DNA from: Magallana gigas
Lineage: Eukaryota
Assembly: GCF_963853765.1 (NCBI RefSeq)
Contig: NC_088859.1
Location: 35,774,001 to 35,838,000, forward strand
Reading direction: 5' to 3'
Length of the DNA: 64,000 nt
The position numbers and the translations under genes were made by a program. The notes beneath the pieces were generated by a model, which saw nothing but the letters and a program-made list of their open reading frames with translations, had not been told where the DNA came from and made no database searches. This document shows positions 33,784-36,892 of the stretch, one piece after another (position 1 is the stretch's first letter; each line of letters opens with the position of its first letter).

Positions 33784-35587
33784 ATGGACCCTCCTGTATT
33801 TCTGCTCTTGGTGCTTCTCTTTGGACTAAGCGAAGGTCGTGTTGAAATTAGAACAACAAAGGTTGGGGACGGTAAGAATTTTTGCAAATTGATTTTCCGT
33901 CTTTCTTATATTTCATGTACATGTCGTATAAGTGTTAATACATTAGTAAGATACTGCCTTAAAGGCATGAACAGATCGAGACATAAAGCAATAATTGCAG
34001 GTATGCTTTAATAATATTAGGTGTCGACGCAAAAATGAATATGCATGATATATAATGTAGTGGAAATTGAAAATGAATGATTCAAATTCTAGATAAAGTG
34101 AAATACTGATAATGTTGTATTTGAAAACCCGATGAACTTTTCTTCAGTATCGTGAATATTACGGACACAGAATGTGTTTTAAATTAATGGGGATTTATGC
34201 ATTTAAGAACGAATTTGTAATGCATTTTACATTTTGATATTGAATAAGATTTTTTAGTGGATCGAGGGGCTATCGCATACTAGCAAATCGTTATGGTTTA
34301 TAGGAATTGAATATCAAAACATCTATCTTTATATATTATGTTATCTTTCAATAATATAAAACGAAGCAAATTTGTGTCAGAACCTTATTTATGTACTTGG
34401 CATGTTAATTTTATAACGAATTTAATTTGTAAGGTCAATTAAACAATTTGCTTTTTATGTTGAAAAATAATCATACACCTTTTACATTTCTAAGTACTCA
34501 CCTTGTGACCTTGAATAAATTACAATGTGTGTACACCTGTCTGTAACTACTATTACGTCAGGATTTTCAAAACAAAGTTATGATGTCAGTTATATTATGA
34601 TCGATATCTAAAAACATTTGAAATTCGTGTCAAGTAAATCTTTATTTTGAAATTTTTTTTTTCAATCTAATCTTCAACAGGTTTTTTTAACAAACAAATA
34701 AAACGATATGTTCTTGCTTACATTGATGCTTTCACTTTCTTTACCCCCAGATAAAACAATACCCAAAGACGGAGACACAGTGTCTGTCCACTACACAGGT
34801 GAGCTTGTTACCTTCTTACCATTATTGATATTATACACCTTTATTGTTTCATAAAAATTTGTTGCGAAAATCCCTGGGTTTTTTCTGACAGTCGTAGTTT
34901 AAAATGCGTTCAAGTGACAATACGAATTGTGTACAGCATAAGTAAAGTTGATTAAGTGTAATTAACCTGTCAAATTTTGTGAAATGTCCATTGTTTTAAG
35001 GAAAATGACATCTAATGTTTTATATACAAATTATTACCTACGCTTAACTAAACTTTGCAGAAATAGATTTGCGGTGAACATGTGCAGCACAATGAATCAT
35101 GAAAAAAAATCACTGATTCTGCATAATTTTATTTGAGGATTATACGCCTGTTTTACAACACAAAGAATTTGCTCAGAGATGCTTACTTTGCATTTTGCAA
35201 TAATATTGATTCTATGAGAAACAGTTCAAACTTATTGACATGTCGTCATACTGTATGTATTTGTGTTGTTACACGATATGATACATGGTTTGGTTGTTAA
35301 TGGCCCTCTGTGAAGACTTCATGGTTCGCGTTATTACGTTCTAAGGAATATAAGAACAACAAAACATCAAATGTTCCCAAAAAGCATCAGACCTGTTAGT
35401 TAAGCAGATTTCAGTCTGCTTATGAAGTCTCAATATTATTTGTGAAAACATACAGCTTATGTCCCACTTACTAGAACTATAAGTATCTAGCAGAAGGATG
35501 TACATGCATGTACACATATTTTTATTGCTTCCAAAAACTCTTAGCAAGATCCGAGAACAACAAAACCCTTCTAAAAATGATTTACTG

Positions 35588-35651
<64 letters not shown>

Positions 35652-36892
35652 GAAATTCGATTCAAAATAGTAGACGAATTTGTACTTTAAGTTACTTATT
35701 CTTTTTCTGATACATAGGTCGACTGACCGACTCCAGAATCTTTGACACGTCACGTGGTCGGTCTCCGTTCGATTTTGTGGTGGGACAGGGATCAGTCATA
35801 AATGGTAAGTCCGTATGATACGTGATATGAGTTTATCATCTCTACTCAAACTGCAATGCAAATTAAAATATAAAAATCGTTTGTTTCTTTCAGGTTGGGA
35901 TGTAATGGTCCGATATGTAAGTACAAGACTGGTGATTGAAATAGATTTCTTTTTTAAAACGCCATTTACGCTACCACATATCGCATGTTTTTCAGATGAG
36001 CAAAGGACAGAAGGCCCGGGTCATTATAACCTATGACGACGCATACGGAGACACCGGGATACCCCAGTCATATCCTTTCATAAACAAGCTTCGCGTCTTT
36101 TTCCAATGCATTTTGTTTTTCATTAAGATGTTGTGTAGAATATTTGTTTCTTGATTTATTTCTATCGTAAAGCAAAATTCCTTATCTGTTATCAAAAACC
36201 CACCCATTCCACCGTTTGCGACTCTGATATTTGATGTGGAAATAGTGGACGTTAAGCGGGGGGACGCTCAGGGACAAGGGAACTCTTTGATCCAAAGCAA
36301 CGCTGCTGCCACCCAAAATGTCCAGGCCAACATTCAAGCAACTCAGACAGGACAGAGTGCTATTGGCGGACAAATCGGGCGACAAGCAGGACAGACGGCG
36401 ATAAACTTCCCACAACAGACCTCGGGTACTGCGTTGATGGGACAGACGAACACAGCTGGAGGAATAGCAACCGCCGGTGGAGTTCAGGCTGGAATGTTTG
36501 GAACTCAAGCAATGAACCCCCTGTTAACCCAACAACAAAATCAGCAGTTTAATCAGGCCAGTTTGATACAACAGTTGAACGCAGCTGCTGCTGCAGCAGG
36601 CGCACAGCAACAACAGCCTCAGCAACAGCAACAATTCATGGCGCAACCTGGTTCGCAGACATTTAATGCTTTGAACACGTTACAAACGCAACAACAACTT
36701 CTTGCAGCACAAGCTCCACAGCAACAGTTCGCTGCACGAACGGTTATGCAACAACAACCTCAGTTTGCACAAACAATTGGTATTCAGCAACCAGCGTCCC
36801 AACAGATCGGGATGGGTGTTGGTCAAACCCGAGGAGTAGGCATGCCGATGGGGAATACAAATTTTGTGTCACAAGTCGGGCAGACAGGATAG
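33784..36892 (+). CDS. Signal-peptide FKBP with C-terminal Gln/Gly/Ala-rich low-complexity tail, ~337-338 aa (paralog 3)
   Basis: Exons 33784-33871, 34751-34798, 35718-35804, 35894-35916, 35996-36069, ~36196/36199-36892. MDPPVFLLLVLLFGLSEG-RVEIRTTKVGDDKTIPKDGDTVSVHYTGRLTDSRIFDTSRGRSPFDFVVGQGSVINGWDVMVRYMSKGQKARVIITYDDAYGDTGIPQS..PIPPFATLIFDVEIVDVKR, then ORF 36236..36892 (Q-rich). Exact last acceptor uncertain. Confidence 0.82.
35588..35649. repeat. (AC)n(AT)n microsatellite
   Basis: Direct reading. Confidence 0.95.
36070..36198 (+). other. U12-type intron with non-canonical 3' end (paralog 3)
   Basis: Donor ATATCCTTTC at 36070; branch-like TTCCTTATC at 36178-36186. In-frame ends are AA (36195 or 36198); the AC ends (36199, 36203) are out of frame. 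Confidence 0.75.

Follow-up and report, generated by a model that had tools for sequence, protein, structure and literature searches.

A tandemly duplicated oyster FKBP12 gene with a putative signal leader, a conserved glutamine-rich tail and a U12-type AT-AA intron

Background

The FKBPs of the secretory pathway (FKBP2/FKBP13, FKBP7, FKBP11 and FKBP14, with FKB-3, FKB-4 and FKB-5 of Caenorhabditis elegans) have an FKBP domain preceded by a signal peptide and are presumed to act on secretory or matrix clients; for collagens and elastin, the action of secretory-pathway FKBPs is established. FKBP12 (FKBP1A/FKBP1B) is, on the other side of the family, a cytosolic, FK506-binding isomerase of 108 amino acids (aa). 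The gene described here, indicated as gene C, lies at positions 33784-36892, on the + strand, of a 64,000-nucleotide (nt) stretch of the Magallana gigas contig NC_088859.1 (positions 1-64,000, in the following "the window"). Its 338-aa product is composed of a hydrophobic leader, putatively a signal peptide, an FKBP12-type domain and a long glutamine-rich tail, and the correct reading of its last exon depends on a U12-type intron with AT-AA ends.

With the secretory-pathway FKBPs the gene C product shares the FKBP domain and, putatively, the signal peptide; it differs from them in lacking EF-hands, disulfide cysteines and any retention motif or transmembrane anchor, and in its origin, an independent one, from FKBP12, by tandem duplication. 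With FKBP12 it shares the domain over its whole length, catalytic pocket included, and the gene shares intron positions with two canonical FKBP12 genes of the same cluster; it differs in the 18-aa leader, the 211-aa tail, an insertion in the 80s loop and a deletion at K44. FKBP12 in the strict sense is a single-domain, cytosolic form of about 108 aa, with neither targeting signal nor extension: the gene C product is, as judged from its sequence, FKBP12-derived, and not FKBP12 in that sense.

The tail recalls the cohesive phenylalanine-glycine (FG) nucleoporins of the GLFG type and the Q/N-rich prion-like domains, since it is almost uncharged, rich in Q, N, G, S, T and A, provided with a Phe every 10-30 residues and predicted to be disordered; in a Pinctada orthologue the tail consists largely of xQFG(S/T) repeats. 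The likeness is one of composition only, with no Pfam or profile match at E <=10, and two differences are evident: the gene C protein is presumably extracellular, and the oyster tails are non-repetitive, with conserved unique motifs.

As to the intron, AT-AA introns are part of the A-type AT-AN class (PMC8280824) and are rare, three being reported in human, four in mouse and one in Arabidopsis (Sheth et al., PMC1557818). The gene C intron resembles the U12 AT-AN introns in having ATATCCTT as 5' splice site and, 11 nt upstream of its 3' end, a TTCCTTAAC-like branch site; it differs in that the change from AC to AA can be dated.

Results

Gene structure and transcripts

A previous interpretation of this DNA, made from the letters alone and here called the sequence-only reading, placed the gene at 33784-36892. 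These coordinates are exact, the ATG being at 33784 and the TAG stop codon at 36890-36892, and every element described in that reading is present. When joined and translated, the six exons, all on the + strand, give 1017 nt and 338 aa, with no internal stop.

Exon 1 (33784-33871) encodes the leader and the first FKBP strand, and ends in phase 1. It is followed by exon 2 (34751-34798, 48 nt, DKTIPKDGDTVSVHYTG), found with the same size in the paralogues and in Pinctada, by exon 3 (35718-35804, RLTDSRIFDTSRGRSPFDFVVGQGSVING), by exon 4 (35894-35916, 23 nt, WDVMVRY), also found as a 23-nt exon in paralogues B and D and in Pinctada, and by exon 5 (35996-36069, 74 nt, MSKGQKARVIITYDDAYGDTGIPQS), which ends in phase 2; exons 3 and 5 each give a partial match to Pfam FKBP_C. 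Exon 6 (36196-36892) starts with a lengthened 80s loop and the last FKBP strand (36196-36250, NPPIPPFATLIFDVEIVD, located by the model and by alignment to FKBP1A), continues, in the same frame, into the tail (36251-36889, 213 residues counted from VKRGD), and ends with the stop codon. When the region 33500-37200 is read, the tail-bearing open reading frame (ORF), of 218 codons, is the final coding block of the gene. The introns are AT-rich, and the first four have plain GT-AG ends. Upstream of the ATG, which features A at -3 and G at +4, an in-frame TAA is found at 33778-33780, 6 nt 5' of the start codon.

Public RNA runs were found by using the last exon as query, and four of them (X1, X5, X7 and X22) were placed on positions 33600-37150, leaving out 35576-35658 as a repeat. 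An (AC)n(AT)n microsatellite is present in intron 2, at 35596-35650. In both X1 and X5, all five joints are carried on single assembled contigs, including the joint at 33870/34750, with GT..AG ends, also found in one X22 read, and those at 35803/35893 and 35916/35996, on the two sides of exon 4. In X7, which comes from a third study and bears a different organism label, a contig carries the last joint. X22, a stranded poly-A library, contributes few raw reads, whose first mates map on the minus strand, fitting an mRNA from the + strand. The 5' untranslated region covers at least 33600-33783, as an X1 contig is unbroken over 33600-33870 and extends upstream of 33600; the 3' untranslated region covers 36893-37041, the contigs terminating between 36992 and 37041. 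Gene C is an expressed, six-exon gene, and its tail is joined in frame in the mRNA.

Transcripts that never join the FKBP exons in frame to the glutamine-rich part would have refuted the sequence-only reading: in the X1 and X5 contigs the two are joined. Two details of that reading have to be corrected. The leader had been described as a unit spliced onto the FKBP gene, and is instead part of exon 1, where it extends the N-terminus ahead of the first strand, encoded in the same exon; the glutamine-rich part had been assigned to an exon of its own, and is instead the continuation of the exon of the last FKBP strand, beyond the position where the paralogues have their stop.

Compared to the window, RNA contigs of several runs contain in-frame CAA (Gln) insertions behind 36688 and 36787: the length of the Gln runs in the tail varies within the species. 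This polymorphism matches the 339-340 aa forms found in the databases.

The last intron

The last intron of gene C (36070-36195, + strand, 126 nt) starts with AT and ends with AA. Introns were regarded as U12-type on the basis of a 5' splice site (A/G)TATCCTT and of a branch site TTCCTTAAC located 10-15 nt before the 3' end. Both features are found here: the sequence past ...CCCCAGTC, at the end of exon 5, is ATATCCTTTC, corresponding to the U12-type 5' splice-site consensus, and a branch-site-like TTCCTTATC is located at 36178-36186, its A being 11 nt before the 3' end. The termini are neither of the canonical pairs, AT-AC or GT-AG, and their AT..AA sequence places the intron in the known, rare AT-AN subtype. 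The corresponding joint, 36069/36196, is found in contigs of X1, X5 and X7.

This is the only frame-critical joint: the reading frame of gene C hinges on the AT-AA splice, and the intron is spliced in frame. Exon 5, if left unspliced, runs into a stop, and no in-frame AG acceptor is available; the sequence itself predicts a minor intron that can keep the frame only by ending in AA, and not in AC. Candidate GT-AG solutions were rejected: none of them keeps the frame without either the deletion of a strand or an insertion of about 20 residues, and the RNA shows AT..AA. An AC is present three bases downstream, at 36198-36199, but its use would shift the frame and lead to a stop after nine codons; it is absent from all contigs, which, however, drop rare forms, so that a minor AC-spliced isoform could go unseen.

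The sequence ATATCCTTT is found at the same codon in all four tandem paralogues described below (at 22284, 32368, 36070 and 40977), directly ahead of the last strand's IPP motif, and is followed by a TTCCTTAAC-like branch site; the 3' end of the intron is AC in paralogues A, B and D, and AA in gene C. Three genes of the homologous locus of Pinctada (L004, sites 8831, 18057 and 31910) likewise feature a U12-type intron at this place. The minor intron is thus an old, stable feature of the FKBP12 genes of these bivalves.

The intron ends may be compared among species, a slash indicating the joint: an Ostrea edulis-type contig reads TTCCTTAAC...gtcAC/AAATCCACCC, Pinctada ...tttAC/AAACCCACCC and the window ...atcAA/AAACCCACCC. 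An in-frame AC is therefore found at the homologous place in O. edulis and Pinctada, and is missing in gene C of the window. In two Crassostrea virginica-type ORFs (P0010 and P0011), the intron-end residue, before NPPIPP, is Thr (ACN), which implies an AC end in this species as well. Since AC is found in O. edulis, in Pinctada and in the paralogues, and is implied for C. virginica, the last base of the intron changed from C to A in the Magallana-type lineage, with no change in the place of splicing.

The FKBP domain

The domain scores 97.9 bits against Pfam PF00254 (FKBP_C; cut-off 21.1), covering profile positions 3-94 of 94, and the C. virginica and O. edulis orthologues obtain the same score. 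When compared to solved structures by phmmer, it aligns end to end with human FKBP1A (E=5.5e-28), and its top single-domain matches in PDB are FKBP1A/1B. Most of the catalytic-pocket residues had been noted as kept by the sequence-only reading: in comparison to human FKBP1A, Y26, F36, D37, R42, F46, V55, I56, W59, Y82 and F99 are all conserved (10 out of 10). The changes with respect to human FKBP12 are Ser for E54, Ile for H87, the deletion of one residue at K44, and an 80s loop longer by three residues (GIPQSNPPIPP vs GHPGIIPP). The ratio of nonsynonymous to synonymous substitutions (dN/dS) is 0.017 for the domain, in codon alignments of gene C with an oyster transcript (L002) and an O. edulis-type contig (L003). 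Because of the intact pocket and of this low ratio, we infer that the domain still binds Xaa-Pro segments, and it probably isomerises them.

The N-terminal leader

The start codon and the 18-aa leader MDPPVFLLLVLLFGLSEG occupy 33784-33837 on the + strand. On the basis of hydrophobicity and of comparison with the orthologues, the leader is a putative cleaved signal peptide, with the cut predicted before RVEIR: it contains an uncharged run of 14 residues, reaches a maximum 9-residue Kyte-Doolittle value of 3.67, and features Ser at -3 and Gly at -1. The corresponding leaders of four oyster species (MDPPVFLLLVLLFGLSEG, MEFSFLIFLVVLFGLNEC, MEVTLVPFFVILLLGYSES and MEFLLLPLLMFILYGYSEC) differ in sequence; all contain hydrophobic runs of 13-15 residues and a small residue at -1, and all but that of C. 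virginica, which has Asn, a small residue at -3. Directly after all four leaders an invariant RVEIRTTKVGDD is found, and the start of the mature protein, R(V/I)EIRT, is kept across oysters and Pinctada, the leader itself having diverged (dN 0.52). The Pinctada leader also follows the pattern of a 13-15 residue hydrophobic run and small -1/-3 residues, which brings the number of species to five. Cleaved signal peptides usually evolve in this way, free in sequence while hydrophobicity is kept.

The hydrophobic leader had been pointed out by the sequence-only reading, and its presence is now accompanied by a hydrophobic character kept between species, while the sequence drifts. The absence of KDEL or HDEL, also pointed out there, is evident from the C-terminus of gene C, and extends to its orthologues: KDEL, HDEL, RTEL and HEEL are found at none of these C-termini (...VGQTG for gene C; ...GASG, ...TTSG and ...NFQQG for the orthologues). 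No transmembrane segment or EF-hand is found in gene C, where FKBP_C is the only Pfam domain. From these features we infer that the leader is a cleaved signal peptide, and that the protein enters the secretory pathway. The mature protein, as predicted, is composed of 320 aa (33.9 kDa, isoelectric point about 9) and contains neither Cys nor an N-x-S/T sequon.

The glutamine-rich tail

Counted after the K of the last strand, the tail is 211 aa long. Its composition, over the 213 residues starting from VKRGD, is dominated by Q (26%), A (15%), G (13%), T (9%) and N (7%). Five basic residues (4 R, 1 K) and one acidic (D) are present, with no E, C, W, Y or H; the grand average of hydropathy is -0.46.

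An in-frame Q/G/A-rich tail had been read from the sequence, and proves to be not only joined in the mRNA, but also conserved and under constraint. In the same codon alignments used for the domain, its dN/dS is 0.12-0.14; this ratio and that of the domain are both approximate, as dS, about 1.5, is near saturation, but they indicate purifying selection on both parts. The oyster tails align with a mean column identity of 75%, share long invariant motifs, among them FNQA.LIQQLNAA, AQPG.QTFNALN.LQ and QQPQFAQ, and contain 7-9 Phe at conserved positions, one every 10-30 residues. Constraint and long invariant motifs indicate that the tail is a selected protein sequence, rather than drifting repeat DNA. 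No internal repeat was found in the gene C tail. The in-frame CAA indels, the conserved orthologues and a dN/dS well under 1 make the fusion more than a product of chance.

Relatives of the tail were not found beyond the oysters: a profile of seven oyster sequences, run against 1.84 billion representative proteins, returned only two oyster clusters, comparison to the ESM Atlas gave no usable match, and nothing meaningful was found in Pfam, even at E <=10. Matches of the tails to DUF7019 (E=0.035) and to a holin (0.19) were taken as chance. Within the genome, the tail is single-copy when used as query, and no second copy was found by tblastn in the 64-kb window.

The tail is predicted to be disordered: in an AlphaFold2 model, based on a five-sequence alignment, values of the predicted local distance difference test (pLDDT) remain under 35 along its length, and two weak helices are seen at 143-154 and 228-241. 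With a mean pLDDT of 37 the full-length model is poor, and disorder is only weakly supported by it.

Orthologues

The search with the last exon led to full-length proteins of 339-349 aa with the same design, and to last-exon ORFs of other species. Orthologues are found in Crassostrea angulata (XP_052687839) and O. edulis (XP_048762052), both named "uncharacterized", and in C. virginica (XP_022318028), reported as "putative uncharacterized protein" in NCBI and as "peptidylprolyl isomerase" in UniRef.

A search scored on residues 1-128 led to FSP39_018265, a 408-aa "hypothetical protein" of Pinctada imbricata. The deposited model was rejected: it is a chimera of exons from across three tandem FKBP genes, in which the exon before the U12 intron is omitted and intron sequence is read instead. 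In that locus (L004, 3001-32929; GCA_033119305.1, VSWD01000010.1), A-like, B-like and C-like genes follow each other in the same tandem order as in the window. The re-modelled orthologue is a clean ORF of 334 aa, with a leader MNYTYISWTVFLVIFVLSVVDS followed by RIEIRT, the same exon sizes as gene C (48, 23 and 74 nt) and a U12 AT-AC intron (ATATCCTTTAC ... TTTCCTTAAT ... AC/AAACCCACCC). Its tail, of 201 aa, is made of Q (30%), G (19%), S (11%) and A (11%), with three charged residues and no C, W, Y or H, and contains 15 Phe, mostly as xQFG(S/T). No alignment of this tail to the oyster ones was possible, and a search with it found only itself.

Pinctada belongs to Pterioida and the oysters to Ostreida, both within Pteriomorphia; the design, being present in both, predates their split. 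As far as database sequences go, the leader-FKBP12-tail combination is a new, lineage-restricted architecture, whose entries are all unnamed or uncharacterized. The sequence-only reading had held it to be undescribed, which is only in part correct: no paper on the protein was found in the literature searched, but the protein is already present in public databases, as "uncharacterized protein".

The tandem FKBP12 cluster

By a Pfam search of the genome, which gave two further places, and by tblastn with the gene C protein, four FKBP12-like genes are found in the window, all on the + strand. Besides gene C (33784-36892), supported by RNA and sequence, they are paralogues A, B and D, whose models were built by hand from sequence alone and are all in frame. 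Paralogue A (20418-23665, five exons, U12 AT-AC intron from 22284) and paralogue D (39310-41350, six exons, U12 AT-AC intron from 40977) encode canonical 108-aa FKBP12 proteins, MGVTVQQ...LKLE and MGVEKQ...LGLK respectively. Paralogue B (30309-32586, U12 AT-AC intron from 32368) is FKBP12-like: it starts with a signal-like sequence (MEGKFLVCVVLVLQCMGVLG), has a degenerate pocket, and is extended by 17 aa at the C-terminus. A and D are 68% identical; gene C is 44-50% identical to either of them.

That gene C is an FKBP12 duplicate, as proposed from the sequence, is sustained by the structure matches, the best of which are to FKBP1A, by the tandem location with two canonical 108-aa FKBP12 genes, and by the common intron positions, including that of the U12 intron. 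B and C share a 1-aa deletion and signal-like, hydrophobic N-termini. In B the pocket is decayed (W59 to L, F36 to I, F46 to L): it may be a second exported relative of FKBP12, putatively catalytically dead. A comparable leader, MANQLFIGILGVFLSCLYVHG, is found in the B-like Pinctada gene (L004, 14746-14901). A run of 146 N, either an assembly gap or a mask, is found at 29275-29420, about 0.9 kb upstream of B.

These relationships would fit an order of events in which a signal-bearing FKBP12 duplicate, ancestor of B and C, arose first, followed, before oysters and pearl oysters separated, by the loss of the stop codon in C and the acquisition of its tail.

Other features of the window

Two long minus-strand ORFs are present at 4189-5838 and 8416-10281 (549 and 621 aa), encoding highly charged, Ser/Lys/Glu-rich protein. 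They contain about nine ECEATQVF(D/S) repeats and five repeats of 36 aa (...VCTDINIPVDDEPEQDDVVPKRGRRGKLSTKSEPKTKITEGTEETL). The clustered TQxF motifs recall the DNA-damage mediator MDC1; no Pfam match was found. A strong strand composition skew is visible here.

Discussion

With moderate confidence, and on the evidence of sequence features, gene C is proposed to encode an expressed, secreted protein of FKBP12 type, derived from a signal-bearing duplicate, whose cohesive tail localises the isomerase in secreted material. Cleavage of the leader would yield a mature protein of about 34 kDa in the secretory pathway; having no KDEL-type signal and no membrane span, it would be exported from the cell or kept in secretory granules. 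The conserved Phe, Leu and Met of the tail would act as "stickers" in a background of Q/G/A/T/N "spacers", so that the tail, either cohesive through self-association or binding to a matrix, would behave in the manner of FG-nucleoporin or prion-like domains, and would keep the isomerase concentrated or anchored within a secreted gel, granule or matrix. A further, putative idea is that transglutaminase cross-linking could use the tail as its Gln donor.

Several observations weigh against this proposal. The n-region of the leader has no positive charge, and an Asp at position 2. The absence of Cys and of N-glycosylation sequons is unusual, though not disqualifying, for a secreted protein, and uncharged Q-rich domains occur much more often in proteins of the nucleus and cytosol. 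The replacements of E54 and H87, with the longer 80s loop, could alter the substrate or ligand specificity of the domain. Finally, the predicted disorder of the tail and the approximate dN/dS values are to be read with the limits reported above.

Among the alternatives, the one that survives best, although it is judged unlikely, is that of a resident foldase or holdase of the endoplasmic reticulum or secretory pathway, similar to FKBP13 (FKBP2) or to the secretory FKBPs of C. elegans, kept inside by the binding of its tail to clients and devoted to the folding of Pro-rich cargo. A signal-like leader combined to an intact FKBP pocket is what such a protein would feature, and the uncharged tail could serve as a holdase surface. 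Yet none of the four retention motifs is found in any orthologue, EF-hands and membrane anchor are missing, and the domain is derived from FKBP12, rather than being similar to FKBP2/7/14.

A role as a shell-matrix or adhesive protein, produced by mantle or foot, built into the organic matrix and acting on Pro-rich matrix proteins in the formation of shell or cement, is rather improbable. In its favour, all carriers of the design within the range of the searches are pteriomorph bivalves with heavy calcification. Low-complexity Q-rich domains are frequent in shell proteins. FKBP and peptidylprolyl isomerase domains are listed, only generically, in the biomineralisation toolbox of bivalves (PMC8382897), and a signal-bearing FKBP was found in the coccolith matrix, a distant parallel (PMC11685980); the peptidylprolyl isomerases mentioned in shell-related papers are cyclophilins (PMC8059625, PMC7820862). 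The protein, in contrast, is named in none of the literature or supplements searched, also by accession and locus names, and its tail, with no Glu and a single D in 213 residues, contains neither Tyr nor Cys, and no chitin-binding or other matrix domain. Being without Tyr, which makes 3,4-dihydroxyphenylalanine (DOPA) chemistry impossible, and almost free of acidic residues, the tail is unlike both mussel-type adhesives and classical acidic shell proteins.

The composition of the tail, typical of intracellular prion-like or activation domains, the lack of Cys and sequons and the acidic n-region might also suggest that the protein is not secreted at all: the hydrophobic stretch would be an uncleaved anchor, or have no targeting role, and a cytosolic or nuclear protein would form condensates by means of its Q-rich tail, recruiting FKBP12 activity, as in transcription or RNA-granule proteins. 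Little probability is assigned to this possibility: a stable membrane span would need more than the 13-15 hydrophobic residues present, small residues come after them at -3/-1, change in the leader follows the pattern of signal peptides, and cytosolic FKBP12 is already supplied by two canonical paralogues.

Lastly, the view of the tail as an accident of a mis-called frame or read-through, in which the U12 intron would normally end at the AC at 36198-36199 to give a short, tail-less product, the Q-rich ORF being non-functional or a minor isoform, is left with hardly any probability and is largely refuted, since, in spite of the lack of an in-frame AC acceptor in this species and of the minor AC isoform that contigs might have dropped, the AA at 36194-36195 is used in contigs of all three runs, use of the AC would remove the last FKBP strand, the tail is conserved (dN/dS about 0.13) with indels as in-frame triplets, and at the corresponding site O. 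edulis and Pinctada carry an AC that is in frame.

The proposal of a secreted FKBP12-type protein with a cohesive tail may be carried further, to a bolder and quite doubtful form: the pteriomorph protein, a secreted, Cys-free FKBP12 with an uncharged, Phe-studded, Q-rich tail, retained from a time before oysters and pearl oysters separated, would form an extracellular condensate or hydrogel of FG or prion-like nature, holding the isomerase in secreted material and steering the folding or assembly of Pro-rich matrix proteins. Candidate host materials are the organic matrix of the shell, the ligament, mucus, the crystalline style and secretory granules.

The locus features a datable change from AC to AA at a U12 intron, with use proven by RNA, and shows, by the Pinctada imbricata model, how U12 introns may cause errors in gene models. 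Gene C would likewise be a clear example of how a gene is born, by tandem duplication, extension of the ORF at its N-terminus, generating the signal, and loss of the stop codon, generating the tail. If the proposed function is true, the design would be an unusual one, an exported enzyme of protein folding that carries its own cohesive, low-complexity scaffold, and would provide a compact model for enzymatic activity in the extracellular condensates or gels of biomineralising animals.

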